This document shows, piece after piece, positions 24,441-64,000 of a stretch of DNA of 64,000 nt. The notes below the pieces were generated by a model, which worked only from the letters and a program-made list of their open reading frames with translations, made no database searches and was not told where the DNA came from. Both the position numbers and the translations under genes were made by a program. Within the stretch, counting starts at the first letter, position 1, and each line of letters starts with the position of its first letter. Location: contig NW_025766981.1 in the NCBI RefSeq assembly GCF_003918875.1, positions 186,001 to 250,000 of the forward strand, read 5' to 3'. This DNA comes from Haliotis rubra (taxonomy: Eukaryota).

Positions 24441-24547
24441 CTATATGGTCCATACTCAATTATTTATAGACACGCTACACAGCAGATATATTTCTGCTAC
24501 CTGACTGATATGGCATACACATTGTTAACTTACGTTTTACAATTCAG

Positions 24548-29076: not shown

Positions 29077-29314
29077 ATGACAGAATGAAGGACGGAGGCG
29101 AAGGACGACGAGTGCATAAATATATACTTTGAGGAAATAAGAGACGTTTAGAGAACGGGATAAACGCAAAACCAAATTGTTCGTTCTAATTATTATTATT
29201 TAATGGAAGATTCTGGTTGCAAAACAGCATGAATATAAGTTTAGGGATAACATGATCAACACGAATGTCTACCAGTATTCCGGCTTCTTTGAGATGCATT
29301 TTAGAAGTTGTAAG

Positions 29315-39200: not shown

Positions 39201-42200
39201 TACCAAGCCGCCTCCTGTCATCGACAGTCAATTTTCTGGGCCTACCTGCGCCTCCCTGGTGCTCAATGCCATATCCATTTGCAATATTTTTCAAAACACG
39301 ATAAACAGTGGACAAAGGGATGCCTGTTCTACTTGAAATCACTTTAGCTGATCTGATGTCCTTGTTATAATACTCTAAAATCAACTTCCTCTTCTCTAAA
39401 TTATCCATACGGAGGATCACTGCAAATGTCGTCTGCTAGCAAGTAAACAAAGGGGGATAACTCTTCACAAACTAATGAAAAAGGATTAACGGAGTTGTCT
39501 CTCTTGAATGAAACCAAGCACTTGATAGCTGGTCAAGGTTGTTTATACTAGAAATCCAATTAAACATATTCCTAAAATTCTCAATAATTTCTGGTCATAC
39601 TATATCACCATTGATAGGAGAGAACGTAAGAGCTACTAAGTCACGTGAGTCAAGTTTGTACTGACGGAATGTTGAAGCAATGTGTTACACTTTAACTGTG
39701 AGACACCTACTTTCACCGCCATGCCGTTTAGATCTGTACTGACACTGGCTCCCGTCGACGATGTATTGGGAACAGTGTTGGTGCTCGTCTCGGCGATGTG
39801 GATGGTGCTAGCTGGTATTCCAAGGACATGTGACGCCACCTGGTTTATGATCGGACCACTGTATTAACGTAACTGTTGTTACATCACAGGACATACACAG
39901 AGATGGTTTGGTAGACCATCAACGATTACTGTTACGCAGCAGTGGAAGACTTAAAAATAAGTTCATTATAGTTTTACTTACAGAAACATGAACCAACGAA
40001 ATATTTCAACGGTACTATATACAGCAATATGTCCTAATTTGACATAACACGACACGGTCCTTATGTGACCACCGAAACCACCATATGGTCCAATTGAAGT
40101 CCTTATTTGACTTCTTACAATTATGCCCTGATTTGGCACTATAAGAGACAGTCGCCGACAGCGTGGCTGCTCTATCGAAAAACAAAACGAACTCCTGCCT
40201 AGTTCAGTGACAATGTACACTGTCGCAAGCTATTGCGCAATTCTGCACGTGGTTCACGCACGGCTATCCACCTCTTTTGAAGTGGTGCGTTCGTGCGAAT
40301 GTTTGGGTTTGTTCGGACCTACTGTCCAATTACTATAGTCGTTAAAGATGTTAGGGAGTATCAGAACAGTCACTGGTTTTAGCATCACCTGTATCATCTT
40401 GATGTAGAGTCCCTGGCCCATCTCCGTCCCTCCCTGGGTCAGCAGCACCGAGCCGTCCACGTACACGTGCACCAGAGCACCTGCCTACATACCAACATGT
40501 TCCCGTACAAACATTTGGAAGAACGGTTGAGGAAATAATGGACATCTAACAGGAACGGATTAAACTTTCCGATGGCTTTGTTGCAGTGATTCTGCAGCTA
40601 ACTCAAATATTTTGAAGATAACGAAAATGTACACGTACCTTACAAAGAAATCTGTCTTTGAAGCCGACGCCAAAGCGATAGGGAACCATCGCAAAGCCAC
40701 GTTTCTTCCAACGATTGTGTCTGTAGTATGTCAACACTGAGGTTCAAGTCAATACAACAGATACAGAATATACGTGAATTGCAAAGTCATTGACATATGT
40801 ATAATACCAGAAATAAGCGAAGTACTTCCGAATGATTCGTTTGTTTTCCTGTACACAGAAAATATAAACATAAGAGAAGACGCAGTCCACTCGTCGTGGC
40901 TGGTATGTTTATAAACCCTACAGAGGTGTTTATAAGCTTATGCCATCCTACACTCATACCTAGTAAACTGTTGTACCTTTCTCGCATGTTCAATATGTGT
41001 AACGGTCATATCGGGATAGTTGCACATGACATACCTGTGAAACTGTTGCACCTGACCCTATCAGGAAATACGTAGATAGCTCTTGTACATGGCCCACCTG
41101 GTAAACCCCTTCATCTGATTCACCTGCTAAATCTATACACGTGGCATACCTGTAAAACTGTTGAGCTTGAACCTATCAGAAAATACTTTGATAGCTCTTG
41201 CACATGGCTCATCTGGTAAATTAAACCCCTTCATCTGATTCAACTGCTAAATTCGCACATGTGGCATACCTGTAAAACTGTTGCACCTGACTCACCTGTT
41301 AAACTCCTTCGCCCTTGTATTCCGGACTTCATACTGACTTTCCTCCAGACACTGACGCCAACACCGAGACAGCGTGCAGTTGTCCAGCAACATCGTCGTC
41401 ACCATGACGTCACCCTCTCTCAACATGTTCATCTCACGCACCTGCCAACAGCATTCTACATAGATATCCGATACTAGGATCGGGTGTGGGTGCGGGTGCG
41501 GGTGTTGGTGTTGGTGTTGGTGTTGGTTTGGTGTGGGTTCGAGTTCAAAGGTGCGGTTCGGGTTCGTTGGTTCGGGTGTGGGTGTGGGTGTGGTGGGTGT
41601 GGGTGTTGGTGTGGGTGTGGATGTGTCTGCGAGTGCGTATGCTCTATTGACATGTCATCTAACATTGTCTGGTCCAGACTCGATTATTAACAGACCGCCA
41701 CCATATAGTTGGAACATTGCTGAGTACGGCGTTAAACAACAAACCAACAAAACAAACATATACGACAATATATTGTATTGCCAAAACGAAACCTATCATA
41801 GGCATGTCAGCATAAGGTGTAAATGCCAAATACTGAATGGGTGAGGGTATTGTGGAAGGATTAATCCAGGTCACCAAGTCCAACAAGGAATTATTATATT
41901 CAATATATACCTTGGCTTCAGCCATGTTGAGCCTGCTGGCAACCTTTGTCATTATCACCTCCGACACCAGGAAACTGTCAGGCAGACCGAACCCTCTGAG
42001 GGCTGTATTAGGTGGAGTGTTCGTCTTACACAGGTAGCCCCGTTATACGGCAGTTGGGGTAACGGTACGCTGACTCGAAGTTCAACACACTCAACTGCAG
42101 AACCTGTGAACATATGAAACGTAACTAGGGTAGACATGTGATTATGATGTCGAACACTATTGTCGTAGGGATTGATCTTGTATATTCTGCGAGAAAATAT

Positions 42201-45200
42201 ATATACTCACGCCAAAGGCTATGTCAGCAGAATGGCCAGCGTCGACGTACATGTCCATGGCAACGCTCTGGATCCGGCCGTCTTTGGTGTAGCCGACCTG
42301 AAGAAACACCAGACGTGTTGGCGTTGGCATTGGCGTTGGTTGTGTTGGTGTTGGTGTTGGTTGTGTTGGTGTTGGTTGTGTTGGTATTGGTTTTGGTGTT
42401 GGTTGTGTTGGTGTTGGTTGTGTTGGTGTTGGTGTTGGTTGTGTTGGTGTTGGTTGTGTTGGTGTTGGTGTTGGTGTTGGTTGTGTTGGTGTTGGTGTTG
42501 GTGTTGGTGTTGGTGTTGGTGATGGTGGTTGGTGTTGGTGTTGGTGTTGGTGTTGGTGTTGGTGTTGGTTGTGTTGGTGTTGGTGTTGGTGTTGGTGCTG
42601 GTGTTGGTGCTGGTGTTGGTGTTGGTTGTGTTGGTTGTGTTGGTTGTGTTGGTGTTGGTGTTGGTGTTGGTGGTTGTGTGGTGTTGTACTGGTGTTGGTG
42701 TTGGTGTTGGTGTTGGTGTTGGTGCTGGTGTTGGTGCTGGTGTTGGTGTTGGTTGTGTTGGTTGTGTTGGTGTTGGTGTTGAATTGCTGGTGTTGGTGTT
42801 GGTGTTGGTGTTGGTGTTGGTGTTGGTGTTGAAGTTTGTGTTGGTGTTGGAGTCTGCTGGCAACCTTTTGTCATTATCACCTCCGACACCAAGAAACTGT
42901 CAGGCAGACCGAACCCTCTGAGGGCTGTATTAGGTGGAGTGTTCGTCTTACACAGGTACCCCGTTATGCGGCAGTTGGGGTAACGGTACGCTGACTCGAA
43001 GTTCAACACACTCAACTGCAGAACCTGTGAACATATGAAACGTAACTAGGGTAGACATGTGATTATGATGTCGAACACTATTGTCGTAGGGATTGATCTT
43101 GTATATTCTGCGAGAAAATATATATACTCACGCCAAAGGCTATGTCAGCAGAATGGCCAGCGTCGACGTACACGTCCATGGCAACGCTCTGGATCCGGCC
43201 GTCTTTGGTGTAGCCGACCTGAAGAAACACCAGACACATGACTGTGTGACGCAGATATTAAGCAAATGTCCACAAGTGTGTTCCTTCCTTAAGGCCACAC
43301 AACTGACAAGTTTTCAGAAGGTTGCAGCAAAAATTTTTCAAGATTCTTTATTTGTAGAGAAGGCCACATGACCCGTTGTACAAATATTAAATATATAAAA
43401 TATTTACGAGTTACAGTGAACATGTCCTTTACTCTTTGAGTAGACATAGGGTATTTGGCTAAGTTGAACAATGCATTACAATAATGTATTATAATGCTAA
43501 AAACGGCGTAAGACCCTGGCCATTCAGTTCACGAAGGTCTTATCAGCCTTTCAAGCACACACTGGAACTCTTTCATCTCAAGTAGTTGAAGTTTCAGCTT
43601 GTGACCCAAACGCGATCTACAGTATTAGATGTTGATGTCCTTACTTTGTACTTGGCGTGAAACCTGGGCCCCTTCCCCGAGATGGTCATGTCCGTTCTCC
43701 GGTCCAGCACACATCTCACCGGCCGCCGGTACCTGCAACAGCGACAACACATCGTGTACACGACGTCATGACAAAACTTTCAGTGCAAAGTATATGTTTG
43801 TTAAACCTTGTCATACTGAGACTCGGTCTCGATTCCCAACATGGGTTCAAGAGGTTCGTTCTGAACGTCTCCGCTGCGAGACCGGGGCGGTGGGGTAGCC
43901 TAGTGGTTAAAGCGTTGGCTCTTCACGCCGACGACCCGGGTTCGAATCCCCACATGGGTACAATGAGTGAAGCCCATTTCTGGTGTCCCCCGCCGTGATA
44001 TTGCTGGAATATTGCTAAAAGCGGCGTAAAACCAAACTCAGTCAGTCAGTCAGTCCCTGCGACACCACTGCTGAAATCAAATGTTTCAGGCAAAATAGTT
44101 TCTGTTATTCTCGTTTCATATGTAAGGTGAGGTGAAATTGGGTTTTACCAATTTCTGGTGTACCCCGCTGTGATATTACTGGAATATTGCTGGAATATTG
44201 CTAAAAGCGGCGTAAAACCCAACTCACAAATAAGGTTGAGTCTGTGATGCATAAACTTACTTGTAGGCAGCTACGGCCACAGGTTGACAAAGGAGGTTGA
44301 TTCTTGTCTCCCTTCCACCGAAAGCACCACCTGTAAGTGAAGCAATGTGAAGAAACATAAAAATACATCAACCTTTAACACTAATACGTATCCGCTAAAC
44401 CTCACAGAAACACCGCCTCCGTGGTGTAGTGGTTAGAGCCTCCCTCCCGGAGAGTGGAAGGTCGCTGGTTCGATCCCCGACCGCGTCATACCAAAAGACG
44501 TTAAAATTTGGTACTTGTTGGTCCCTGTCTGGCGCTCGGCATTAATGAATTACAATAGGGACTGGTCGGTTCGGAGTCAGTATAATGTGTCTGAGTGGGG
44601 TATTCATGCTTCACTGCGGCATGGTATCTCAGTGGGCTAGCACTATAAAACCAGCTTAAGTCTGGGCTAGTACAAGCAGCCGCACATACACATACACATG
44701 CATGCACGTCGTCATATGAGCGAAATATTCTCAAACACGACGTAAAACCCAATTTCACCTCACTACAGAAACACCAGTATGTATCAGCAACATTCCAGCT
44801 ATATGGCGGCGGTCTGTAAATGATGAAGACAATAAAGTGATCAACATAATGAGCATCGATCAACGCAATTGGGATACGATGACATATGTCAACCAAGTCA
44901 GCGAGCCTGACCACCCGATCCCGTTTGCCGCCTCATACGACAAGCATGTGTTGCTGAAGATCAATTCTAACCCGGAACTTCACGGGACCAACTAACATGT
45001 GACTAACATCAAGCACGTGCTAATTTAATGGACCAGGATCTACACGAAAAGGTCAAGAAAGTGCTTGATAAAGGCACTTGCAACTATATCGAAATGTCAA
45101 GCAAGTGCTAGCATAGTAAATATTATTTTTCATGTTATTTCCCGGGGTATACGATGTCAAACTAAAACAGTGAGTCTGTGTGACCCCTGCTGTTTTGTAC

Positions 45201-48200
45201 AGAAAGCAACTCACCCAATCTCTTGACATGACACACCACGCGGTTGAGAGGAATACCCAGGACCTCAGCTACACTATTCTGTAAATGATAGTTAGGATCG
45301 GAACATGTATCAACAATGGGATGCTAACTGATACAAGTCCAGTGATCAATATTATTTACTTAATATACCAACATTATACATTCATATTGAACAAGAAAAA
45401 CATCGAGACAAGCTATGCTCACGGCGCTCCTAATTATTAGCCAAGTCGGCAGTTCATGGATAATTGATTTTGAATTCTCAACTCCATGGGAAGTATACAC
45501 CCTATCTGGTCACTATATATATAAGACCAGAGACATTCATTATTTTATGTAGCTCAGTCATATATCTGACTATGATAATAGGTGTACAATAAATACTCAT
45601 AACCCTGTGGATGTATAATCTAAACATACGCTGTTGGCCTACAAAGACAATCAGCTGACACACAATTATATTAGACAAAAGCAACACACCTGCGCCGAGG
45701 AAGGATCTTGTGCTGTACAGTAGAGGTCCACCTCGTTGTGCTCTGCTCTTGGCGTTACCAGAACACCCTGCCTCTCCATGTAGAAGTGTTCACGGGCGTC
45801 GATGTCCACGTGACCCACAATAACGTCATCAGACGCAGCGAAACCGGCTTCAACGTCACCGAAGACAATGGCTGGCTTTGGCCAGTTCCTCAGTATAAAA
45901 CGCCTTCTCTCGTATGGCGTCCTGGAACACCAGGTGAGAAAGATGATGATTAAATAAACAAGGAGGCAAATGGATAATTGTTGAGTGTGTCAGTCAAGTT
46001 AATACCAGAGTGCCAGCATTTTGTGTTGACCCTGGACGGAGAAGGCTAGAGCAAATTGGCAGTGCCAGTAGCTTAAATCAGGTCTCCTCTCCATTGTGCC
46101 GGTAGTTTAAATCTCCTCTCCATTATAACCTAAACTCAGTTGCCGACACAGAACCAATACCGTACCTCAATAGAAAGAATGGCAGGTAGATCCTCGTATG
46201 TCACCGTCACGTGTCTTGCTGCTTCCTGCGCCACCTGGCGATCTTCGGCAAGCACAAGGCCGATAATCTGACCACAACACTTCACCTGAAGAATTACACG
46301 AATAGTGTAAATGAAAGAGTTTCTGAAATGTCACTGTACGACTGACATAGAGCCTGAGTCATTTTGTATCATGCCATTTCAGAACACTCTATTACACATA
46401 TTGCTGATAAGGGGGCCTTTGGGTGCATTGAGTGAGTGAGCGAGCGAACGAGCGCCTGAGTTTCACTTTTATCTGAAGTTGGCTACAGTCTATCAGTACT
46501 ATACAGTACAAAAACAAAAAGAAAGTATTATACAGAATGAATTTGTTCTAAATCTGTATCAGCTGTCTGTCAACAAGGTTCATTGACTAGTAACCTTTCC
46601 CTTCTGGCAAGCGGTTTTGAATAATTATGATTGAAAGATAACTTTTGTTAACTAACCTCTGTTTCAGCAAATGCCTGTTCATCCTGTATAGCACATCCCC
46701 ACAGGTTCTTCCCTGGCACATCCTGGTGATCCACATATCCCGTTACCCCGGGCAACGCAATAGCTTTGGTCACGTCCACGTCCTTGATTCGAGCGTGTGG
46801 TCGCGTGCTCAGCACAAGTCCAGCATACAGTTCACCTACAGCGTACATCATATATATAGCGTTATGGTAGGACAAATTTAAATTTCTGTGTCAATGCCCA
46901 TTTAATGAAACAATCTAATGCTACGATCAATCTGTCAAACGGACCCTAGGACGGAACAAGGACGTAAAATGTGTTGCCATAGCTACCTTCAGATCGCGGC
47001 ATGTCGTCCAGGTACACAGCCTCTCCACACGTCATCTGTAGGGCACTGGAGTGTGGGATAGGACGACGTATGGCATCTTCCGGAGGTTGATCTGGACCGA
47101 CAGGGTCAAACACTCGGGTACTCTCGTAGTCCACAGTAGACAGGGCAGAGGGGCCGTTGGGGTCAGTCTTCGGTGAAAAGAAACAGGGCGACTAAGTACT
47201 CTGACACTTTCTCTCTGGTGGAGAATATGGAGATAAAACTCTCAGTACAGTCTATAAGGCCAGCAGGTTGACTTTAGACATGGCAGAGGGGCCATTGAGG
47301 ACAGAGAAAGGATACAAAATGACCTTGAACTCTGGTAATCTGTTAGCAGAGAAAGTGCTGTTGGTACAGTGTAGAGAGAGGATTAAATGAACAGCAACAT
47401 CCTACAGTTTGATTCTGATATCCGTGGTTGTAGATGAAACCGCTGTAACAGATGAAACCGCTGTAACAGATGAAATCGCTGTTACAAATGAAACTACTGT
47501 TACAGATGAAACCACTGTTACAGATGAAACCGCTGTAACAGATGAAATCGCTGTTACAAATGAAACTACTGTAACAGATGAAACCACTGTAACAGATTAA
47601 GCCACTGTTACAGATGAAACTGCTGTAACAGATGAGACCGCTGTAACAGATTAAACTGCTGTAACAGATTAAACCACCTCGGTATTCTGATCGTGAGAGG
47701 TGACCGAATGGGATCGGGTGGCCAGGCTTTGTGACTTAGTTGATTGCCTGTATTTATGATGCCCCAGTGTCGTTGATCGTTGATCAATCTTTCAGAAACT
47801 GTCTTGTCTGTGCAACATATTATCTTACAGACCGTTCCTGTTTAAATAACTGCTGCATTCGCATTCGCGGTCGCGTATACCACTTGTCTACCTTTCCACT
47901 GATGGTCTCTTCTATAGCAAACATGAACTTGAAAGCTTGTGCCATAGCGACATGCCGGGCGTCTTTAGTGACGGTCGTCCTGTTGTCGAGGAGATTGCCA
48001 ATGGATTTAAGAACGGTGGTCACCAGTGATAGAGACCAGCATCTGAGAAAGTGAGAAGCAGAATTCACATATTAGCAACGTGGAGATAACAATTGATGTC
48101 AGATGCCAGCTAAATATACTGACGTTAGACATGGTTATAATCATCGACATCTCATAAATATTATCACTGACATCAAATACAATTCTCTTGAAGTCAAATA

Positions 48201-49206
48201 CATGTACGTGACAGGAAGAAATTCACAAAAGGCGGATATAATTTAGAGCGGTTACATCAGATTCCATCTAAACGGAGGTGTTCAGTGATGTATGATTCCA
48301 GTGATGAACCAAAGATCAGTTCAAAATTTCTCATTTACAAATATAATCATCTTTTCCTTGACCATGTTCAGGCTATTCCGTGGAATAAGTCAATGAGAAG
48401 CTGCTCTTTGGCCTGATGATGGCATCACTTATCATACTCACTTTCCTGCCATTTCCTGCTGAAGAGCTTGAATTTTCACAACCGGCTGGAAACATTTCCC
48501 GCCAAAAGTGAAATGAATGTCCTCGATGACATCACTTCCTGGTTGAAATGACATCACTGTTACAGCATTTACGTATGACGTATCGAACCCTCGGCGTTCT
48601 GGCTGCTTGTAGAACATCACGTGATCACCCTGTCACCACAAACATGAATCAAGTTACGACACGTGATAACGCTGAAACTAAATAAGGAATACGTGTGATG
48701 TGAAAACAAAACCATTACTCTTCATAAACACGCACCTGTTTCGTGAAGGGCAAGGTGACGTAGATGAGGACGTCAGTGGGGTCAAGGCCTTTTAAGGGAG
48801 GCATAGACTTTATCACGTCACGGTAAGGCAGAGTGCGTTCACCTTTGACTGGGAAATAAAACTATAGCTGTAATACAATACACTCATCTATTGAAACGCA
48901 AAGTTATCGTTAATTGTATTATATATTTATACGCATCATCAATGCTAATTGAAGACGCATTTAAAACATGTCCTTGAATACCAAACATCTCACATTGAAA
49001 ATGTAATCCATTTCTGTATAGACATCTGAAATGCACAGACACAAACTCTGCTCTTTGCCACCGTTGTGTAGGTGACAGCACTGCGTGTGTAAACTACCAG
49101 AATTATTCTTACCTGCGTTGTCGACGTGGAGCATGGCGTCGAGAGCCAGGAAGACTGGTTGGAGATCAGAAACAGTGGCCGAGTTGAGAAGATTGCCCCC
49201 AATACT
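30205..49206 (-). CDS. Xanthine dehydrogenase/aldehyde oxidase-family molybdo-flavoenzyme, copy A (5'-truncated in window; two 1-bp frameshifts, so either a pseudogene or assembly errors)
   Basis: 23 GT-AG exons, listed 5'->3': 49113-49206, 48736-48848, 48442-48629, 47892-48042, 46987-47167, 46657-46835, 46166-46285, 45690-45921 (+1 nt), 45215-45278, 44261-44330, 43645-43732, 42211-42297, 41911-42103 (+1 nt), 41296-41441, 40639-40720, 40389-40484, 39711-39839, 37947-38021, 37776-37828, 37343-37460, 33425-33511, 31978-32145, 30205-30381 (stop). Motifs [73 protein letters not shown]. Confidence 0.93.
32252..32755. mobile_element. Composite SINE B + SINE C segment, an inverted copy of ~44440-44935
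   Basis: Shares the non-SINE junction GCTGATACATACTGGTGTTTCTGTAGTGAGGTG with the 44.4-44.9 kb segment. Confidence 0.85.
33675..37315. repeat. 27-bp minisatellite (~3.6 kb, ~135 copies) in a copy-A intron
   Basis: Unit GTGGACATACCTGACGTTATCCTGTAA with variants and higher-order blocks. The long ORFs over it are repeat artefacts. Confidence 0.97.
38314..39602 (-). mobile_element. Near full-length Tc1-like transposon in a copy-A intron
   Basis: TA-flanked TIRs CAGTACAACCAGAAATTATTGAGAATTT; ORFs 38911-39420 (GAGRPRK, VIFSDES) and 38446-38868 ([19 protein letters not shown]). Frameshifted, and the second catalytic D is changed to N. Confidence 0.93.
41480..41625. repeat. GT-rich (GGTGTK)n microsatellite
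   Basis: Direct observation. Confidence 0.85.
42315..42850. repeat. (TGTTGG)n microsatellite separating the duplicated exon pair
   Basis: Direct observation. The low-complexity ORFs here are artefacts. Confidence 0.95.
42846..43236 (-). pseudogene. Tandem duplicate of two copy-A exons (43132-43218 complete; ~42850-43024 truncated at its 3' end)
   Basis: Near-identical to ~41925-42316 at a 921-bp offset. The second exon lacks its 3' end and donor and runs into (TGTTGG)n. Confidence 0.85.
43884..44055 (+). mobile_element. tRNA-derived SINE, family A
   Basis: GGGGCGGTGGGGTAGCCTAGTGG...GGTTCGAATCCC head and (CAGT)n tail. Confidence 0.9.
44412..44987. mobile_element. Full-length SINE C (+, 44412-44763) tail-to-tail with SINE B (-)
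   Basis: SINE C is flanked by an ACAGAAACAC TSD-like repeat; the adjacent family-B copy is complete. Confidence 0.85.
47432..47678. repeat. 18-bp minisatellite
   Basis: Unit GATGAAACCGCTGTAACA, ~13 copies. Confidence 0.9.
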
Positions 49207-49375
49207 CTGTAATGAACGGTGATGTATTAAGTACTTTCTGCCATCACCAACCACCACCGACAAAGTTATCATCCTTCAAGTTTTCATTTTTCTGTTTATA
49301 TCCCCAAGTAAGGGAACATATTATCACGTTATAACTTGAGATTTCTAATTTCAAAGCACATACAATACAGAATTA

Positions 49376-49530
49376 TCACCGGGTATTATACAAGAGGTCA
49401 TGTCACCGGGGATTATACAAGATGTCATGTGACCGGGGATTATACAGAAGGTCATGTCACCGGGGATTATACAGAAGGTCATGTCATCGGGGATTATACA
49501 GGAGGTCGCGTCGCCGGGGATTATAACGGA
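49376..49530. repeat. 27-bp tandem repeat starting exactly where homology between the two gene copies ends
   Basis: Unit like TCACCGGGGATTATACAGAAGGTCATG, ~6 copies. Confidence 0.85.
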
Positions 49531-49829
49531 TGGCATCTTGATAAGGACCACATAGGAGTGAGTGAGTGAGTTTAGTTTTACGCCGCTCTCAGCAATATTC
49601 CAGGTATATGGCGGCGGTCGGACCAGATAAGACGGCATGTAAGTGATGCTGATTATATAGGCCTTGTGAGGTAAACATTAGGTGGCCATTGCAATCCGGA
49701 AGATATAGGGGGTCATGTCACTTGGGACTATTAAAGGTCATTTCAACCAAGAGACCATTTATGTAAAGATATGCCCGTGAGATCTTCGCAACCACTAGCC
49801 GTTACATTGTCACTACACGTGTCTTGTAG

Positions 49830-52800: not shown

Positions 52801-55800
52801 GGGCCAAAGGACCGACGTTAATTTCGAACGCTGTTTATCAGTATAGAACCGTTCCTAGTTTTGTAAAAAACTCGGAAGACCTCCCACTCACTCACTCAAA
52901 TGATGTAGTCAATGCTCAAACGCAACCTTATTCGGAATATAATGTAGACATATGAGGATGATACATTTAGGGTTCTGAAGTGGCATGATTCTTGATGCGT
53001 CCGTTATTATATACTAGTAATTAAATTTCTGAGACTATTTCATTAATAACTTGAGTAATTCTTCAGGTGAAGTGTTGTGGTCAGATTATCGGCCTTGTTC
53101 TTGCCGAAGATCGACAGGTGGCGCAGGAAGCAGCAAGACACGTGACGGTGACATACGAGGATCTACCTGCCATTCTTTCTATTGAGGTACTAGCTATATA
53201 TATATATATAGTTCTGTGCCGTAGGTGCGTGTTAATAAGGGCCTGTGCTTCGTTCTATAGAACCTATTTCTGAGGGTTGTTGGTATTACATTACCAGTTA
53301 CGCAGTATACCCTGGTTAAAATGCCACCGTTTGTCCAGGAGAAATTGTGTAATTGGCATAATAACCAGGGAGAAATTACTTTTGTTCCAAACGCCATTGG
53401 CAAATGGCATCATATTCAGTTCGGTGTTATAACCAGTGTATTGTAAGGCTAGGACATCAATTCGGGCAAAAACATGACATTATATCCAGGGTGGCATTAT
53501 AACCAGGGGCATTATAACCAGGGTGCACTGTTATGCAAATATAGACTGAAGAGGCAACAACGGCGTCTGGCCTTCTTGATTCAGACTTCTGTCTCTCACT
53601 CCGCTGTAAGACTGTCCCGTTGGACAACGAATTTTGGCAGACTAGAAAATATTAACATCATTGATGCACTCAACAATTGTTAATATGAATATGGTTCTTG
53701 TATCATACATTTGCAAGCCCTGCAATCATTGCATCAACAAAGTTAACACATACCAATTCATCATGAAAACCTGGTGTTCCAGGACGCCATACGGGAGAAG
53801 GCGTTCTTCACCGAGAAACCAGCCACACCAGCCATCGTCTTCGGTGACGTTGAAGCCGGTTTCGCTGCGTCTGATGACGTCATTGAAGGTCACGTGGACA
53901 TCGACGCCCGTGAACACTTCTACATGGAAAGTCATGGTGTTCTGGTAAAGCCAAGAGCAGAACACAACGAGGTGGACCTCTACTGCACGACACAAAATCC
54001 TTCGATGGCACAGGTATATATCATTGTCTTTGAGTAAGTGAGTATGATGTTACGCTGCTTTTACCAATATTCCAGCAATATCACGGCGAGGGACACCAGA
54101 TTGTACCCATATGGGGAATCGGACAAGGGTCTTCAGCACGACGACTGGACGCTTTAACAATTAGGCTACCCCACCGCCCCAATTACCTTGGAAGACCAAC
54201 ACTGCGTGTCCAGAATGCATCCATATAGTAAAGTGTATTTGGTGTATTGCTGTTATGACATTCAGATATCATACAACTGGGGTGTTTCAATTGTATCTGC
54301 GATCGTATATATAATGCCCAACGTTGCATGTATACAATCCCCGCCCCACACGACCGTGAAGATCCGGGTTAGAATTGGCCCTCAGCAACCCATGCTTGTG
54401 GTAAGAGGCGGCTAACGGAATGGTTGGCCAGGCTCGCTGACTTGGTTGACACATGTCATCGTATCCCAAAAGCGTAGATCGATGCTCATACTGTTTATCA
54501 CTGGACTGTCTGGTCCAGACTCAATTATTTACAGACCGCCGCCACATAGCTAGATTATTGGTGAGTGCAGCGTTTAACAACATACAAACAACACAAACGA
54601 TTGTATACTCCCCTGGAAACTGAGAATACAAAAGTAATCTTCTTTGGGCGATTATCATATCTTGTGAGCAATTAGCATCCTGTTATTGACATGCGCTCTT
54701 ATTATCCTTTTTGCAGAATAGTATAGCTCGGGTACTTGGTATTCCTCTCAACCGCGTGGTGTGTCATGTCAAGAGACTGGGTAAGTTATATGTGGGCTTT
54801 GATCTATCATTTGGTACAACCAACGACAGTTGTAAGAAAACTCGTTGAACATTGCAGTCGGAATGTATTCATGCCCGTGTCTTTACAAAGCTTTGGCTTG
54901 AAAATTCTCTGTAGATGCTAGAACCTTTATCACGCACATACAACTGACGTTTAGTTAGAGATTTTTGTGCAGTTATCCAAGCACTTGCTAGAGGTTTAGT
55001 TACAGATGTTTGAACCGTTATCAAGCACTTGCTAGAGGTTTAGTTACACATGTTAGTACCGTTATCAAGCACTTGCTAGAGGTTTAGTAAAAGATGTCTG
55101 TACCGTTATCAAGCACTTGCTAGAGGTTTAGTTACAGATGTTTGTACAGTTATCAACACTTGCAAGAGGTTTAGTTACAGATGTTTGTACCGTTATCAAC
55201 ACTTGCTAGAGGTTTAGTTACAGATGTTAGTACCGTTATCAAGCACTTGCAAGAGGTTTAGTTACAGATGTTTGTACCGTTATCAACACTAGCTAGATGT
55301 TTAGTTGCAGATGATAGTACCATCATCAAGCACTTGCAAGAGGTTTAGTTACAGATGTTTGTACCGTTATCAACACTTGCTAGATGTTTAGTTACAGATG
55401 TTTGTACCGTTATCAACACTTGCAAGAGGTTTAGTTACAGATGTTTGTACCGTTATAAACACTTGCTAGATGTTTAGTTACAGATGTTTGTACCGTTATC
55501 AAGCACTTGCAAGAGGTTTAGTTTCAGATGTTTGTACCGTTATCAAGCACTTGCTAGAGGTTTAGTTACGGATGTTTGTACCGTTATCAACACTTGCTAG
55601 AGGTTTAGTTACAGATGTTTGTACCGTTATCAAAACTTGCAATAGGTTTAGTTACAGATGTTTGTACCGTTATCAAGCACTTGCAAGAGGTTTAGTTACA
55701 GATGTTAGTACCGTTATCAACACTTGCAAGAGGTTTAATTACAGATGTTTGTACCGTTATTGACACTTGCTAGAGGTTTAGTTACAGATGTTTGTACCGT

Positions 55801-58310
55801 TATCAACACTTGCAATAGGTTTAGTTACAGATGTTTGTACCGTTATCAAGTACTTAGTAGGGCGTTTAGTTACAAATGTTCGTGCGGTTATCTAAGCACC
55901 TGCTAGAGGTTTGGTTTCAGATTTTAGTATCGTTATCAAGCACTTGCAAGAGGTTTAGTTACAGATGTTTGTCCCGTAATCAACACTTGCTAGAGGTTTA
56001 GTTACAGATGTTAGGACCTTTATCAACACTTGCAAGAGGTTTAGTTACAGATGTTAGTACCGTTATCAAGCACTTGCAAGAGGTTTAGTTACAGATGTTT
56101 GTACGGTTATTAACACTTGCAAGAGGTTTAGTTACAGATTTGGTACCGTTATCAACACTTGCAAGAGGTTTAGTTACAGATGTTTGTACCGTTATTAACA
56201 CTTGCTAGATGTTTAGTTACAGATGTTTGTCCCGTTATCAACACTTGCAAGAGGTTTAGTTACAGATGTTTGTACCGTTATCAAGCACTTGCAAGAGGTT
56301 TAGTTCAGATGTTTGTACCGTTATCAACACGTGCAAGAGGTTTAGTTACAGATGTTTGTACCGTTATTAACACTTGCTAGATGTTTAGTTACAGATGTTT
56401 GTACCGTTATCAAGCACTTGCAAGAGGTTTAGTTACAGATGTTTGTACCGTTATCAACACTTGCTAGAGGTTTAGTTACAGATGTTTGTACCGTTATCAA
56501 CACTTGCTAGAGGTTTAGTTACAGATGTTTGTACCGTTATCAACACTTGCAAGAGGTTTAGTTACAGATGTTTGAACCGTTATTAACACTTGCTAGATGT
56601 TTAGTTACAGATGTTTGTACCGTTATCAAGCACTTGCAAGAGGTTTAGTTACAGATGTTTGTACCGTTATCAACACTTGCTAGAAGTTTGATTACAGATG
56701 TTTGTACCGTTATCAACACTTGCAAGAGGTTTAGTTACAGATGTTTGAACCGTTATTAACACTTGCTAGAAGTTTGATTACAGATGTTTGTACCGTTATC
56801 AACACTTGCTAGAGGTTTAGTTACAGATGTTTGTACCGTTATCAAGCACTTGCTAGATGTTTAGTTACAGATGTTTGTACCGTTATCAAGCACTTGCAAG
56901 AGGTTTAGTTACAGATGTTTGTACCGTTATCAACACTTGCTAGATGTTTAGTTACAGATGTTTGTACCGTTATCAAGCACTTTGAAGAGATTTAGTTACA
57001 GATGTTTGTACCGTTATCAACACTTGCTAGATGTTTAGTTACAGATGTTTGTACCGTTATCAAGCACTTGCAAGAGGTTTAGTTACAGATGTTTGAACCG
57101 TTATTAACTCTTGCTAGAAGTTTGATTACAGATGTTTGTACCGTTATCAACACTTGCAAGAGGTTTAGTTACAGATGTTTGTACCGTTATAAACACTTGC
57201 TAGCTGTTTAGTTACAGATGTTTTGTTACGTTATCAAGCACTTGCAAGAGATTTAGTTACAGATGTTTGTACCGTTATCAACACTTGCTAGAGGTTTGAT
57301 TAAAGATGTTTGTACCGTTATCAACACTTGCAAGAGGTTTAGTTACAGATGTTTGTACCGTTATCAAGCACTTAGTAGGGGTTTAGTTACAAATGTTCGT
57401 GCGGTTATCTAAGCACCTGCTAGAGGTTTGGTTTCAGATTTTAGTAATAATAATAATAATAATAAGAGTACTTTTATAGCGCCTCATTCCCATCACCCAG
57501 GGACATGCTCTAAGCACTTGCTTCGCGTTTGGTGGATATGTCAGTACCGTTATCAAGCACTAGTTTGTTTCACACAGATGTTAGGGCCCTTATGGCGGAT
57601 TTGCTTGTCGTTTCGTACAGATGTGTGTCTATTATCAAGGACTTGACATTTCGTACATGTACGTTTAACCTTGTATATAAGGAGCCATGGTAAACTGATG
57701 GTTCTTCGTAATGCATTATGTTCACCATCCGAAACACCCAAACGTATTAATCAATTTACTGTACTTACAGGTGGCGGTTTTGGTGGAAGGGAGACGAGAA
57801 ACGACCTCCTGTCCCAGCCTGTGGCCGTGGCTGCCTACAAGTAAGTCGACGGGAGTAGATATAAATTTCATTCTACAGCCCAGACAATCCCACATCCCAC
57901 ATCCCACCCCAAAGAAATCACACATTTCATGCTCCAATTAGCAAAAACAAAGGAACCAATGACCAGAAATCAAACATCCCACATCCCACATTTCATCCTA
58001 AAATAGTCTCACAATACAGTAATTAGCTAGTAATCCCACACCAAGCTTCATTAAGTATACATGTATATATAATATAGAACAGTTAAGAAAGGATGGCATC
58101 CCACATTTCATCCTAAAATAACCTCACAATACAGTAATTAGCTAGTAATCCCACACCCAGCTTCATTGAGCGTAGTGATACACAATGTCTTCTTCATTAA
58201 GAAGTTAATGATTGATTTTAGTGAGAAAATTATTTATCATGAATGGATGCTTCCCGCTATATTTGAATTACGGTTTGCTTAGTGTCACAACAATTGGAAT
58301 GCTGACTATT

Positions 58311-58371
<61 letters not shown>

Positions 58372-61300
58372 CAGTTAAGAAAGGGCGGCATGACTGGATG
58401 ATACTCAATGCATGGTGTACTCTATATATAGAACAGCTATGAAAGGACAGCGTGACTCTCAGGGGTAAATGTTGAAAGTGGATGCATAGGCGGTGTCTAG
58501 GCGGTGTCGGCGTGTTATTTGATGAGAAACTAATTGAAACCCGCGAGGTGTTAAAGTTTCTCTGTTTGTTCTTGGCTGGGTCGAGTTTCCAAAATAGACT
58601 CAAACATCTAGCGATTTTGTTTCAAGACACATGCGCGCTCTAGTCCATCACGAGTCCATCTCGTGGTAGGAATTTCGTGCACTGTAATGAAACTGAAATT
58701 CGCCTTGTGTCATCAGCAAGAGAAACGCTGTATCACGTTCATGCATCGGTTTTCTCATTATCGTATTGTGTCAAAGTGCTGACAAGTAGCTTGATCTGTA
58801 GGTCAAGATGGTTCGCTTTGTATTACTGTCTATAGAACTGAGATGTAAAAGACCCCTCCGTGTTACGTTTCAACATTTTATCAGTAGAACTGGTGATGAA
58901 AAGAATTTGTTAGTACCGCGACAGTTCGTTTAAGTATGCATACGTGCCACATCATCAATAGCTTTTAACCTATTTAAGGGTTTGCAAAATTCGTTTACAT
59001 CTTAAAGCGCACCACTGTACGCAACGAATTTAGTTGGAATATTTCATGTAATGGTTGTTCACGTTACATTTAATGCTACAAAAACAGAGTACGAACTTAA
59101 AATTGGAAATAATATCGCCTCGGATTTTATTTTAGATTTTGAAACAGCTTCCAAATTAAAAGCGTTATTTATCAACTTTATTCGAAAATCTAAGACATAC
59201 AACGAAACCACGTGTTGTTTGTTGAGTCATGTTATAAAAAATTTCATTTCACTTTTGATCCACTGTTTGGATCACTTTCCATTCAAAACTCAGACACTAG
59301 CTCTGTTGTATTATTGGATATCGATGACATGATAACTATTGTTGGATATCTTATTAAAGCCGATGCTATTGTGGAGTTGCATCGATTCAAAGAAGAATTT
59401 AAGGATATAGGTGAGTATATTCATTATTTATATAGAGAAGATGTTTCAGTACTCTATATCTTTTTTGTTTAATTATTTTGTGCACTTTACCTCATCAAAA
59501 GGACTATCATGTACAGGTATCCTCAATGTTTCCACTCTTATTGAAATTTGTTATTATGTGAGTGCTGTATCAAGTGATAGGTTGTTAGATAGAATTATAG
59601 CAGTTAGGCTAAAACGAGAATGGTATTCGTTTGGAACGTACATTGTCTTTATACATATGCGATAGTGAGTTCACTAGCAAACTGAGGGAGATTTTGTTGC
59701 TAACAATAAATTTTAAGCCGCGTGTTTAATGATCTGTTGAAAAGCTGCAGAACCTAACACGCTAGTACTTTGTATCAACTTCGATCATCACATATGTTAT
59801 CACAATCACGTATTATCTATCATGTGATACAGATTACTTTATCTGTCTGATAAGTGGTTTATAATTATGTTCATGCGATTGTCTTGAACAAAGGTGATAT
59901 TCACGAATTTATACATCTTGATAGGTGTAATAAACCGCTCAGATAATGATCTTGTGTACCGTATTCTAGTCGAGTATGAACAACTATTAAGAATTTCTAC
60001 TGAGAACGAGAAAATTCACAAAAATTTCTTGCTCTCACACTTTTAATATCACCCACATCGCGATAGTGTAGGATAAATTTCATATTTATTGCTATATAAT
60101 ATTATTGCTAAGATGCGGGAAAATACCGCTGTGAACTTAGGGTTAATATATTGTAACAGGCTACCGTCTACATTAAAATAAATTCATGCGTATTACTTTA
60201 AGGTGTTAAGAGTTAAAGTTCCTTTGACAATATCTCATCAATATCGTACCTAAACACATTGTTTAACTAATGTAATTTAAAACTTATTCTGCACAAGCTT
60301 TAAAATATATGTACGTTTAAAATGAGTACTACTAGCATCATAATGTCTTATTAAGATGGACAGCATCTCTGTAGTTATTCTGTGAAGTAATCTAAAACGA
60401 TATATGAATGGTGCTTGCGAGATGTTTCTCCGAGGAAACACGTGATCACCCAACTCACACAGCNNNNNNNNNNNNNNNNNNNNNNNNNNNNNNNNNNNNN
60501 NNNNNNNNNNNNNNNNNNNNNNNNNNNNNNNNNNNNNNNNNNNNNNNNNNNNNNNNNNNNNNNNNNNNNNNNNNNNNNNNNNNNNNNNNNNNNNNNNNNN
60601 NNNNNNNNNNNNNNNNNNNNNNNNCCACTCACGACAGGATACACGCCAGAAATGAATAGTATTGATATAATTTATCATTCGGATGGAGAGTGGAGTTTGA
60701 AAATTTCTGAAAAACGTCACCATTTGAAACTATTATCTTAAATAAATTTTCTGCCGAAATCGTTTACAATTATTTAGGAAAATATTTTGAAACGAGCAAG
60801 AGTAAGTGAGGTTGTCACTATTGGTATAAGTTTAAAAAAAATTATTTCCAAAATTTTCCAAAAAACATTTTTCTGGTGTTGTCCTATTGTGCCACGGAGG
60901 TTTAACATTTATCTTAGGATGAAATGTGGGATGTGGGATTTCTGGTCATTGGATCCTTTGTTTTTGCTAATTGGAGCATAAAATGTGTGATTTTTAGGGG
61001 GTGGGATGTGGGATTACCTGTGCTGTAGAATGAAATTTATATGTACTGACGGGGTAGCTAGTGGTTAAAGCGTTCGCTCGACACTCCGAAGATCCGGGTT
61101 CGAGTCCCCACATGGGTGCAATGTGTGAAGCCCATTTCTGGTGTCCCCCGCCGTGATATTGCTGGAATATTGCTATAAGCAGCGTAAAACTAAACTCACT
61201 CACTCACTTTCAGTAAGTCGATGCATGTTCGACCCAACCTGAAATGTATGCGTGAATAAAGGAAACATCACGTTACACAAGCATTTGCAGCCATATTGAG

Positions 61301-63896
61301 GGGAGGGCCGTCTAGAATGAGCTTCTCATGCTACTCCCGATGTGATCGAACCTGAGGCTTCGGTTTGACAAGTAAACGCTATGCCCACCAGGCTAAGCAA
61401 TAACATCTATGTCGCAGAGAACGTTCTGGAATGACGTCGTGTACACACTATGTTGTCGCTGCTCTAGGTACCGGCGGCCGGTGAGGTGTGTGCTGGACAG
61501 GAGAACGGACATGACCATCTCGGGGAAGGGGCCCAGGTTTCACGCCAAGTACAAAGTAAGGACATCAACATCTAATACTATAGCGCTGTTACTCTGGCAG
61601 GATCTTTAACTGCTTATTATAAAAGAGTTTATCATCTAATGGAGGGTGTTATCGTTGCAATAAAGCAATCTGATAAACTTGGTATCCAAATCTGATAACT
61701 ATGCAAATTACGTCAATCCACGAACTACTTTCACAAAACTCCATACACGCCATGCGAATCCTACAACGTTAACATTTCATTGATGACGTCGTCGCGTGTT
61801 TACATTGTTTGTAAACAAACATGGCTGTCCCCATTCTCAAAATTGGTGATTCTGTAAGAATTGATGACAGAGGTTCTGGAGTCGTTACTGCAGTAATTGA
61901 CTTTGGAAAACATGAAACGGAGTACTTCGTTGAAATTGAGATACGGATTATGAGGGACCATTGAAAGGCAATCGTCTAAGAAAGGTACCAACCAAGGATT
62001 TCGATCTATCGATCAAAATACAGACAACGAATCGGTTCCGTCAGGTATCAGAAACTGATATTGATGAGGTGATTACCCGCAATGAAAATAAAAACACTGC
62101 CAGGAAAAATCCTGCCCGATTGTGTTGTTCTTTTGAGACAGAAAGATCTTATTTTAAGCATGAGTTATGTTTGCACTGTATTAGCGACTAGTCACAACCA
62201 TATGCCGCCGCCATGAACGACCTTCACCTTAGTGTACCGCTAAGTATTCTTACGCGAATGCTCGATTCTCTTCAAATAAATTCACGTACGAGTTGCTTCT
62301 TTTTTTAGAGTAATTTTAAGAATGACATTATATGATAAAGAGATTATTAACCTCGTGTGTTTCCGTATCATTAATATCATATATTAGGAGTAAAAAATAT
62401 GTATTATGCTCGCCAAAGGCACGCATAGTACAATTTTTTATTCCTAATATATGATATTAATGGTACGGAAACACTCTCGGTTAATAATCTCTATATCGGT
62501 TGTATGTCCTTTTGTTTTCCATCCCCACCCTACCATCCTATCTGTAAAAGTCCAAAGATATACACCCAGATTATATTTTCGATTTCAGTTCAAGTTTTTG
62601 GTTTTGACTGCATCTTTCGAAATGTCAACTGTTATACTGAAGATAAGGTTTCAAATGATTCAGAATCATTCTTTAATCTTCAATGATTATCTGTTGTGTA
62701 GGGGCGGTGGGGTAGCCTAGTTGTTAAAGCGTTCGCTCGTCACGCCGAGGACCGGGGTTCGATTCCCTACATGGGTACAACGTGTGAAGCCCATTTCTGG
62801 TGTCCCCCGCCGTGCTATTGCTGGATTATTGCTAAAAGCGACGCAAACCTCAACTCACTCACTCACTCTTCAGGTCGGCTACACCAAAGACGGCCGGATC
62901 CAGAGCGTTGTCATGGACATGTACGTCGACGCTGGTCATGCTGCAGACATCGCCTATGCCGTGAGTATATATTTATTCTCCCAGAAGCTGAAAGCACCTT
63001 TCCTACGTAATGGACAAGAGTGTTCGACATCACCATCACATGTCTACCCTAGTTACGCTTCAAATGTTCACAGTTCCTGCAGATATGTGTGCTGAACTTC
63101 GAGTCAGCGTACCGTTATCCCAACTGCCGTATAACGGGGTACCTGTGTAAGACAAACACTCCTCCTAATACAGCCATCAGAGGGTTCGGTATGCCGGACT
63201 GCTTCCTGGTGTCAGAGATGATAATGACGGAGGTCGCCTGCAGACTCAACATGACTGACATTCAGGTGAGTACTTATACCATCCCTGTTCCCTCACTGGT
63301 ACCCGTGAAGATACGGGTTAGAATTGGTCTTCAGTAACCCATGCTTGCCGGAAGGGGCGACTAACGGCATCGGGTGGTCAGGCTCGCAGACTTAGTTGAC
63401 ACATCCTACCCCAATTGCGAATGTCGATGCTAATGCTGTTGATCACTGGATTGTGTGGTCTACACTTGATTATCTACAGACCGACGCTATATATCTTGAA
63501 TATTGCTGAGTGCAGCGTAAAACTAATCACACAGACACTTACACGTTCCATGCAGGGATGACAAGCATCACACTGGCATTTCTCCAGTTTGCTGACATGC
63601 TCTGGATTGTGTTCTCTTTAGCAACAAATTCTTAAAAGTAGGATGTTTAGTGTAAGTGTTATGGAAATACGAATACGATCCCCTCGCAGAACCATTTACC
63701 CGATTGTTGTTGACCCAAGCATACGATCTATATGGTACGCGTGTTTGCAGGTGCGTGAAATAAACATGTTGAGAGAGGGAGACATGACGGTGTCGTGTAT
63801 GTTGCTGGACAACTGTACGCTGTCCAGGTGTTGGAGTCAGTGTCTGGAGCAAAGTCAGTATGAAGCCCGGACAAAAATGGTGCAGGAATTTAACAG
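49830..63896 (+). CDS. Xanthine dehydrogenase/aldehyde oxidase-family molybdo-flavoenzyme, copy B (no 5' exons in window; runs off the 3' end)
   Basis: 15 intact, phase-consistent exons: 49830-49906 (WKTRSVRVLEDALRWVAAGQVRNVA), 50167-50260, 50520-50632, 50743-50933, 51343-51493, 51753-51933, 52370-52548, 53067-53186, 53783-54013, 54717-54780, 57771-57840, 61468-61555, 62874-62960, 63074-63265, 63751-63896. Same exon structure as copy A. Confidence 0.94.
52617..52833. mobile_element. hAT-like MITE
   Basis: CAGTGTT...AACGCTG ends with a perfect 8-bp TSD TTTATCAG (52609-52616, 52834-52841); a related copy lies at ~13322-13940. Confidence 0.85.
54035..54180 (-). mobile_element. SINE family A (degenerate)
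   Basis: Similar to the other family-A copies. Confidence 0.75.
54353..54600 (+). mobile_element. Family-B SINE-like repeat
   Basis: ACCGTGAAGATCCGGGTTAGAATTGG...GCGTTTAACAAC. Other copies at ~12800-12970, 16225-16385, 25790-25895, 33090-33290 and 63301-63530. Confidence 0.85.
54970..57445. repeat. 43/44-bp minisatellite (~56 copies) in a copy-B intron
   Basis: Unit TTATCAA(G)CACTTGCWAGAGGTTTAGTTACAGATGTTTGTACCG. Confidence 0.95.
57854..61047. mobile_element. Polinton/Maverick-like element (long TIRs, 6-bp TSD) spanning an assembly gap
   Basis: 5'-AGTA...TACT-3' termini; ~140-bp imperfect TIRs (57854-~58003 and ~60910-61047); perfect TSD GACGGG at 57848-57853 and 61048-61053; AT-rich interior; N-gap at 60464-60624. 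No hallmark ORF is visible. Confidence 0.7.
60464..60624. other. Assembly gap (161 N)
   Basis: Run of N. Confidence 1.
61050..61207 (+). mobile_element. SINE family A whose 5' end is interrupted by the Polinton-like element
   Basis: tRNA-like head and (ACTC)n tail; TSD AGTAAGTCGA at 57840-57849 and 61212-61221. Confidence 0.85.
61610..62492 (+). mobile_element. Crypton-like non-autonomous element with a long terminal hairpin
   Basis: The fragment RFRQVSETDIDEVITRNENKNTARK resembles Crypton N-termini; a ~150-bp hairpin lies at 62339-62491. Confidence 0.5.
62701..62868 (+). mobile_element. SINE family A abutting a copy-B splice acceptor
   Basis: Full head; the (ACTC)n tail runs directly into TTCAG|GTC at 62873/62874. 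Confidence 0.9.
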
Positions 63897-64000
63897 GTGA
63901 GTCGGACGAAGGTGTTCAACAGGTGAGTCAGACAAACGTTTTCACAGGTGAGTTTAGTAACAATTTACCAAGTATGTCAGGATTAGGGTTTTAAGAGGTG

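Follow-up and report, generated by a model that had tools for sequence, protein, structure and literature searches.

What kind of enzyme, if any, is encoded by a gene that resembles xanthine dehydrogenase (XDH) but lacks the arginine by which xanthine is handled? This question is raised by a 64,000-nucleotide stretch of the abalone Haliotis rubra (contig NW_025766981.1, positions 186,001 to 250,000; hereafter the window), in which two XDH-like copies, A and B, lie head to head. The reading we favour, with some reserve, is that both arose by inverted duplication of one gene, the "type-2" partner in an XDH-derived pair that is specific to Haliotis and was born of a duplication in the gastropod lineage, that their xanthine site has been lost, and that they formed a once-complete palindrome whose centre has since been lost or collapsed.

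Both copies were delineated by tblastn with P0001, a 1303-residue H. cracherodii protein named 'xanthine dehydrogenase/oxidase-like', a full-length relative returned when one exon was searched with phmmer. Copy A occupies the minus strand, from 49206 to a stop codon at 30205, and copy B the plus strand, running from 49830 past the window end. Tail to tail with B, 7.5 kb away on the minus strand, lies a third paralog that is full length, copy C (P0158, 1271 residues, 34 exons).

30205..49206, minus strand: copy A, 23 exons, residues ~345-1303 of a type-2 XDH-like protein (tblastn with P0001; exon mapping onto copy B)
49830..63896, plus strand: copy B, the part inside the window (threading of P0159; exon 0 by tblastn)
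L001 42624-45104 and L004 10001-68445 (window-equivalent 82862-141306), minus strand: copy C

The locus belongs to contig QXJH01000310.1 of assembly GCA_003918875.1, and public locus L001 equals window positions 40239-60463 and 60625-64000 at 100%. Copy B corresponds to RefSeq model XP_046575146 (P0159, 939 residues), which threads exactly onto the DNA in 23 exons and reaches window-equivalent 75342, beyond the window end. The two arms are ~11% different in self-comparison, and their similarity ends ~60 bp beyond the stop codons. Both copies are ~44% identical to xanthine oxidoreductase (XOR) over more than 900 residues, so the match is not due to chance. In P0159, Pfam recovers the a/b hammerhead and two molybdenum cofactor (Moco)-binding domains (Ald_Xan_dh_C 105 bits, MoCoBD_1 259 bits, MoCoBD_2 283 bits).

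An earlier, sequence-only reading had described a hybrid active site in which Glu802 of XDH is kept and Arg880 lost, and the residues on which it relied were all confirmed by alignment. Three checks fixed the numbering, which is bovine throughout: phmmer of an A exon against bovine 1FO4, in which the glutamate of FGGRETR aligns on E802; phmmer of P0159 against human XOR 2CKJ (E = 1.5e-240), in which the segments around each site are ungapped; and a MAFFT alignment for copy A. Both copies keep the Glu802 equivalent when aligned to bovine and human XOR, and the formal alignment places no Arg at position 880, which is Leu in A and Ile in B. In P0159 the sites read E802=E, E879=Q, R880=I, F1009=Y, T1010=N and E1261=E, and in copy A they read R880=L, F1009=F and T1010=K, the last being the Thr-to-Lys change proposed earlier from GVGFKD. 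The altered motifs GFGLPD/GFGMPD, GKGPRF and RRGFDT were likewise found where they had been reported, as was GIGE, with the Glu1261 equivalent, in A; this last lies outside the range 40639-63265 to which the earlier reading referred but within the window, and GIGE is also kept in B, beyond the window end.

44302..44322, minus strand: FGGRETR of copy A, Glu802 codon at 44310-44308
57779..57799, plus strand: FGGRETR of copy B, Glu802 codon at 57791-57793
43015-43013, minus strand: codon at the Arg880 position in the upstream exon 13 copy of A, Leu
63074..63265, plus strand: exon 13 of B, with Ile at the Arg880 position (codon 63083-63085) and GFGMPD, Phe914 kept
42916-42899, minus strand: GFGLPD of A, repeated in the duplicated exon at 41994-41977
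63182-63199, plus strand: GFGMPD of B
43677-43660, minus strand, and 61523-61540, plus strand: GKGPRF of A and of B
48596-48579, minus strand, and 50776-50793, plus strand: RRGFDT of A and of B
40639..40720, minus strand: exon 15 of A, GVGFKD at 40671-40654, Phe1009 kept and Thr1010 replaced by Lys
30205..30381, minus strand: last exon of A, GIGE at 30381-30370, stop codon

The motifs around position 880, DIAFG/VLQL in A and DIAYA/FLQI in B, are not contiguous in the DNA but are spliced across the exon 12/13 intron (at the slash); the splice for B is that of P0159, and homologous AG/GT sites are present in A. Neither copy carries Glu802 and Arg880 together, as a genuine XDH does, and neither they nor any other type-2 member has both residues replaced, as in vertebrate aldehyde oxidase (AOX). 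The Phe1009-Thr1010 pair of genuine XDH is also absent, being Phe-Lys in A and Tyr-Asn in B, although Thr1010 is a soft criterion, with Ser or Gly in some canonical XDHs of our set. Gln767, Arg912, Phe914 and Glu1261 are conserved in A, B and five other members of their clade.

Arg880 stabilises the transition state for xanthine. By established XOR chemistry, Glu1261 would deprotonate the Mo-OH group, which would attack the C-H carbon of the substrate with transfer of hydride to Mo=S, and electrons would then exit via two iron-sulphur (Fe-S) clusters to flavin adenine dinucleotide (FAD). A pocket without Arg880 could no longer orient or stabilise xanthine and might instead accept another substrate, of the aldehyde or N-heterocycle type. 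Mutants offer a precedent. In the R310M variant of Rhodobacter capsulatus XDH, which keeps the Glu, xanthine activity is undetectable and the kcat for hypoxanthine is 9 as against 2666 per min, while the kcat for benzaldehyde is 211 as against 33 and that for acetaldehyde is also raised (PMC2671166, table 5); Arg880 mutants of Aspergillus HxA similarly lose xanthine use (PMC5746545). By analogy, we predict that xanthine is not oxidised by a full-length type-2 enzyme, whose substrates would be other compounds, aldehydes or heterocycles.

Relatives more than 70% identical to P0001 occur only in Haliotis (H. cracherodii, H. rufescens, H. asinina and H. rubra), the next-best matches being canonical XDHs at 44-45%, among them the Haliotis XDH P0171. 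In a tree of 40 rows (IQ-TREE, LG+C20 with posterior mean site frequencies, quick search), the Haliotis-like clade has a support of 100 and a stem of 1.51 substitutions per site, and is grouped weakly (85) with Haliotis XDH and two Patella proteins, whereas vertebrate AOX is nested inside the vertebrates at 99. Forcing the Haliotis-like proteins and vertebrate AOX into one clade was 29.6 log-likelihood units worse (approximately unbiased (AU) test, p-AU 0.037), a marginal rejection, obtained although long branches would favour joining. The placement near gastropod XDH and away from vertebrate AOX, together with the AU test, supports the independent origin that the sequence-only reading had suggested.

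Within the clade, a type-1 group (P0156, P0396, P0157 and copy C) and a type-2 group (P0151, P0001, P0395, A and B) can be told apart. A and B are sisters (97) within type-2, with P0001 and P0151, and copy C groups with P0156 and P0157. All seven members examined have lost Arg880 (Ile, Val, Leu, Ile, Gln, Leu, Ile). Glu802 survives in type-2 and, among the type-1 proteins, in that of H. asinina, but H. rufescens type-1 has Ile and copy C has Gly at this position, so that the type-1 proteins P0156 and P0158 have both residues replaced (Arg880 being Ile in copy C). Thirteen of 14 pre-chosen pocket columns vary within the clade, as against 37% of all columns (Fisher p 2e-5), and the acidic FAD loop, canonically R-R/K-E/D-D-D-I, has become R-R/Q/K-G-F/Y/S-D-T. 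The eight Fe-S cysteines are invariant in the full-length members (P0001, P0158, P0151, P0156, P0157, P0395); all seven Pfam domains are found in P0001 and P0158, and in full-length relatives FAD_binding_5 scores 117-121 bits and CO_deh_flav_C is weak. Proteins of the seven-member clade are already in RefSeq as predictions, and our literature searches found no description of the abalone paralogs.

A canonical XDH with E802 and R880 (P0171) coexists in Haliotis, and 102 of 132 full-length relatives carry the E/R/E triad in an automatic alignment, which was re-checked by eye before use. Retention of Glu802 with loss of Arg880 is a combination also seen among XDH-like proteins of Patella (P0247/P0266), Mytilus (P0162), amphioxus (P0192/P0208/P0241), Lineus (P0184) and the horse, Equus caballus (P0245). 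These occurrences, and the loss of Glu802 in two clade members, make the 'hybrid' site a recurrent state and not a unique design; the best reading is that XDH divergence passes through it early and repeatedly. The proposal of a non-purine oxidase of independent descent survives in part: the tree, the loss of Arg880 and the R310M mutant support an XDH offshoot without a xanthine site, the retained Glu802 as a fixed design does not stand, and both 'oxidase' (oxygen as opposed to NAD+) and 'dietary aldehydes or heterocycles' are guesswork. The other animals' proteins with this combination, currently called XDH or XDH-like, may be further non-XDH paralogs.

Do the two copies still behave as genes? 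Exon-by-exon mapping onto B gave AG/GT splice sites for every exon of A. Exon lengths are equal in the two copies except at exons 3, 8 and 13; exon 3 of A is 3 nt (one codon) shorter, in frame.

49206-49113, 48848-48736, 48629-48442, 48042-47892, minus strand: copy A exons 1-4
47167-46987, 46835-46657, 46285-46166, 45921-45690, minus strand: copy A exons 5-8
45278-45215, 44330-44261, 43732-43645, 43218-43132, minus strand: copy A exons 9-12
43024-~42866, minus strand: copy A exon 13, upstream copy
41441-41296, 40720-40639, 40484-40389, 39839-39711, minus strand: copy A exons 14-17
38021-37947, 37828-37776, 37460-37343, minus strand: copy A exons 18-20
33511-33425, 32145-31978, 30381-30205, minus strand: copy A exons 21-23, with the stop codon at the end

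Three local defects of A escaped the sequence-only reading, whose account of its motifs was otherwise accurate. Exon 8 (45690..45921, minus strand) is 232 nt long as against 231 nt in B, the alignment placing the extra letter at ~45876/45877, and exons 12 and 13 are tandemly duplicated around a microsatellite, as seen by blastn self-comparison, alignment and Tandem Repeats Finder (TRF). The upstream exon 13 copy has an additional nucleotide near its end, where it is cut off by the microsatellite, and the second has one that shifts the frame (GGGGC as against GGGG in B). With two 1-nt insertions masked, the joined model of A is an open frame of 962 codons with no in-frame stops. Existing gene calls break A into three pieces precisely at these local defects.

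42866..43218, minus strand: exon 12 of A (43218-43132) and the upstream exon 13 copy (from 43024)
41911..42297, minus strand: second copy of exons 12 and 13 (42297-42211, 42103-41911; blastn self-comparison, alignment)
42315..42850: GTGTTG-type microsatellite between the two exon 12/13 copies (TRF)

In copy B, exon 0 was recovered by tblastn with P0001 and P0395 and has good acceptor and donor splice sites. A run of N, an assembly gap or masked stretch, falls in intron 10; the flanking exons 10 and 11 join in frame in P0159 and the XOR alignment has no missing residue, so the gap removes no codon. Public locus L001 has letters at this place (L001 20226-20386).

49830-49906, plus strand: copy B exon 0, residues 314-344, phase-1 acceptor, 96% identity
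50167-50260, 50520-50632, 50743-50933, 51343-51493, 51753-51933, plus strand: copy B exons 1-5
52370-52548, 53067-53186, 53783-54013, 54717-54780, plus strand: copy B exons 6-9
57771-57840, 61468-61555, 62874-62960, 63074-63265, 63751-63896, plus strand: copy B exons 10-14
60464..60624: run of N in copy B intron 10, no coding sequence affected

A and B differ by 0.24 synonymous (dS) and 0.055 non-synonymous (dN) substitutions per site, a ratio (omega) of 0.24. With the H. asinina and H. rufescens orthologues as outgroups, the A branch carries 83 synonymous and 85 non-synonymous changes (omega ~0.31) and the B branch 59.5 and 31.5 (omega ~0.16). Both copies show purifying selection (omega 0.16-0.31), with intact splice sites.

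Contigs of four public runs were placed on positions 45600-51600 (6,001 letters). DNA contigs of two organisms (runs X1 and X4), one of them possibly the source sample, omit one letter at 45876/45877, so the frameshift in exon 8 of A is an assembly error or a private allele. A contig of the second organism spans intron 7 of A itself, so that an A-type locus is present in that organism as well. One contig of 3233 nt, whose run belongs to a related organism and is guessed to be RNA, follows the predicted splicing of exons 1-8 and stops exactly at the acceptor of exon 1 (50166/50167); RNA depth is also present on exon 0. Both copies additionally have an in-frame extension upstream of exon 1 that starts with Met (MITLSVVVGD...; B 50098-50166, A 49272-49207), and a 151-nt contig of an RNA-type run crosses the acceptor of B (50108-50257), which may reflect unspliced RNA or an alternative start.

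Several observations weigh against the reading of A and B as formerly complete type-2 genes whose enzyme no longer uses xanthine. Firstly, the exons for residues 1-313 (B) or 1-344 (A) were not found in the window by tblastn with P0001 and H. asinina P0395 at E up to 10, nor in the 21 kb past the window (L001), and in the 78-kb locus of copy C (L004) the only such exons are those of C itself. Secondly, P0001 residues 1-330 matched no orphan N-terminal Haliotis protein among 5.8 billion proteins, the best match being to Patella at 46%. Thirdly, the RefSeq model of B begins at an internal Met, and the three-piece calls for A can be counted on the same side. Fourthly, a junction as old as the duplication (dS 0.24) would mean that A was born truncated, and its low omega would then be unexplained. 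The AU rejection is, moreover, marginal, the RNA runs come from another organism and their RNA status is a guess, and the substrate class of the clade is an analogy; mutagenesis of mouse AOX1 indicates that positions 802 and 880 alone do not set specificity (PMC2671166). One candidate for an N-terminal Haliotis fragment, P0320, was rejected as only 40% identical.

What is missing is the pair of 2Fe-2S domains together with the first half of the FAD domain. The window copies begin inside FAD_binding_5, at residue 314 in B and 345 in A; P0159 has no Pfam match to Fer2, Fer2_2 or FAD_binding_5, and its CO_deh_flav_C match of 26 bits is just at the cut-off. With their 5' exons absent, neither A nor B encodes a complete enzyme as assembled, and their products, devoid of the Fe-S wire, could not turn over in the usual way. 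The enzyme pictured by the sequence-only reading was sound in its residues, yet the 5' truncation of both copies had been missed.

Between the inverted arms lies an asymmetric centre, the A arm ending on its inner side at 49375 and the B arm at 49991, with a clean non-homologous junction at 49375/49376. Besides the repeats listed below, the centre holds exon 0 of B and 84 bp of B intron, and its sequence is collinear with the intron that precedes exon 0 in H. asinina. Summed contig depth reaches ~1.6e7 at 49419-49619, and owing to this repeat no short-read contig bridges the junction.

49376..49990, plus strand: asymmetric centre between the inverted arms, 615 bp (sequence reading, TRF)
49376-49525: 27-bp minisatellite in the centre (TRF)
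49556-49619: high-copy piece in the centre resembling a short interspersed nuclear element (SINE)

A simple inversion restoring either gene was rejected, because three 3' ends (A, B and C) face one 5' end. Most likely, the centre of the palindrome was either deleted recently or collapsed during assembly, and the truncation came about in this way.

Of the alternatives, two deserve to be taken seriously although we judge each of them unlikely. One holds that A and B are dead relics, whose 5' third was removed by inverted partial duplication or deletion, so that only copy C works and the altered site is a matter of history. The ~150 kb examined without an exon for residues 1-313, the clean junction, the two +1 insertions and the exon pair of A parted by a microsatellite, the fragmentary call for A and the model of B without Fe-S domains all speak in its favour, as does a locus rearranged with respect to both H. 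rufescens and H. asinina. Relics would not, however, be expected to show an omega of 0.31 (A) and 0.16 (B) over a dS of ~0.1 per branch, or to keep 962 codons free of in-frame stops with every splice site preserved; one of the two frameshifts of A is moreover absent from independent DNA contigs, and an A-like locus, intron included, is present in a second organism. Given the constraint and the intact splice sites, the death of the copies would have to be very recent.

The other, on which we are no less hesitant, is that the head-to-head junction is an assembly artefact, the animal possessing two complete genes whose centre was skipped by the draft hybrid assembly. The fully constrained appearance of both copies would then follow naturally, A has one or more indel errors in the assembly, next to the junction lie a minisatellite and a SINE, the latter breaking every short-read contig, and an upstream exon is implied by the good phase-1 acceptor that exon 0 retains. 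Against such a false join, the two sides of the junction have no common repeat that would explain it, arms ~11% apart are incompatible with a fold-back read artefact, and the H. rubra protein set holds no orphan 5' gene model. A contig of the second organism also leaves the A arm at ~49371 into SINE-like sequence, which is weak evidence, with 21 letters on one side.

Rather improbably, the Haliotis proteins may form a private abalone family of fast-diversifying XDH-derived molybdenum hydroxylases, in which almost all substrate contacts change from one paralog or species to the next around a frozen catalytic core, as an invertebrate counterpart of the rodent AOX radiation, or, more boldly, the 5'-less A and B may still be in use. 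In the former case the diversification of the pocket is possibly tuned to algal or xenobiotic heterocycles or aldehydes. In the latter, A and B could serve as alternative 3' cassettes on the 5' exons of a same-strand neighbour (C for A) or as stand-alone Moco subunits, either of which would explain purifying selection on truncated copies. That A and B are ordinary XDHs of purine catabolism with substitutions tolerated as drift can be set aside almost entirely, since the RefSeq name and the retention of Glu802, Phe914, Phe/Tyr1009 and Glu1261 are outweighed by the loss of Arg880 throughout the clade against the triad prevalent among relatives, by the canonical XDH that coexists with it, by the loss of xanthine activity in mutants without this Arg (PMC2671166; PMC5746545) and by a stem branch of 1.5 substitutions per site.

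Returning to the favoured reading of inverted type-2 duplicates, comparison with other abalones places the pair in context. The H. asinina orthologue P0395 (from the 90% cluster of P0159) is full length, with 34 exons, and lies tail to tail with a type-1 gene, as B does with C. In H. rufescens, a type-1 gene is followed in tandem by type-2 and then by a major facilitator superfamily (MFS) gene, and the 3' flank of A matches the flank after H. rufescens type-2. The 5' region of the MFS-transporter gene adjoins A in the window (24455-25086, plus strand; 28021-29236, minus strand), where it is aimed at A; the same gene in H. rufescens follows type-2 in the same orientation. This orientation, beside a 3' flank of A that preserves the H. 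rufescens adjacency, suggests a further inversion or a misjoin. No single ancestral arrangement could be derived from the flanks, most of whose other matches are SINEs.

The locus is rich in repeats. A 27-bp minisatellite of ~134 copies, with units ending in GTAAGT-like donors, fills 33677-37313 in intron 20 of A and abuts exon 20 (37460-37343), and a homologous array lies in a B intron (L001 31076-32500, 80-85% identity). Intron 9 of B holds a 43-bp minisatellite of ~57 copies (54949-57446) between the KRLG-ending exon and the FGGRETR exon. In intron 17 of A, two adjacent open frames at 38449-39435 (minus strand) represent a Tc1/mariner-type transposase remnant (DDE_3 47.6 bits, HTH_Tnp_Tc3_2 38.7 bits). 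A separate, very high-copy element of ~170 bp occurs at 12225-12394, 27238-27406, 43884-44051, 61051-61208 and 62700-62868, and H. rufescens and H. asinina carry it at their orthologous loci too.

The transition from XDH to AOX is a textbook case of neofunctionalisation, and the characterised AOXs lack both Glu802 and Arg880. The abalone clade, in which a stage with Arg lost and Glu kept stands beside paralogs that have lost Glu802, provides a natural series for the order of these changes and their effect on specificity. Mollusc annotations reading 'xanthine dehydrogenase/oxidase-like' evidently hide non-XDH enzymes. Because of its truncation or rearrangement, the draft locus of H. rubra is unsuitable as a gene model, and the full-length orthologues of H. 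asinina (XP_067682412), H. rufescens (XP_048258936) and H. cracherodii are the ones suited to expression.

Set beside canonical XDH or xanthine oxidase (1FO4, 2CKJ and H. cracherodii P0171), the abalone proteins share the domain order, a 34-exon gene in the full-length members, 44-45% identity, the eight Fe-S cysteines, Gln767, Glu802 (in type-2), Arg912, Phe914 and Glu1261. They differ in the replacement of Arg880 by Ile, Leu, Val or Gln, in Thr1010 and most pocket residues, in GFGxPD for GFGGPQ and RRGFDT for RREDDI, and in a CO_deh_flav_C match of 21-26 bits as against 102 bits in Haliotis XDH; the window copies further lack residues 1-313 or 1-344. Vertebrate AOX (human 4UHW, mouse AOX3 3ZYV) is likewise XDH-derived, without Arg880 and part of the acidic FAD loop, and with a pocket that varies among paralogs around a retained catalytic Glu. 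Its origin is nonetheless separate, its Glu802 has become Val, Ile or Thr and its Ala1078/1079 Gly-Gly, whereas Haliotis type-2 keeps Glu802 and mostly Ala-Ala.

The R. capsulatus R310M variant resembles A and B in keeping the Glu and in exchanging Arg for a hydrophobic residue, but it is a point mutant, whereas the abalone pocket has changed at many more positions. HxnS, the nicotinate hydroxylase of Aspergillus nidulans, is also a lineage-specific XDH duplicate with a new heterocycle specificity and Glu802 kept (PMC5746545); unlike the abalone proteins, it retains Arg880 and has an Ala insertion after Phe1009, and it is of fungal origin, unrelated to the abalone clade. The paralogs of other animals in which Glu802 is kept and Arg880 lost are 42-45% identical to the Haliotis clade and lack RYPNC, GFGxPD and RRGFDT. 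While P0241 and P0245 were outside the tree set, P0162, P0184, P0192, P0208, P0247 and P0266 all fall outside the Haliotis clade, and the signature that they share with A and B has therefore probably arisen separately.

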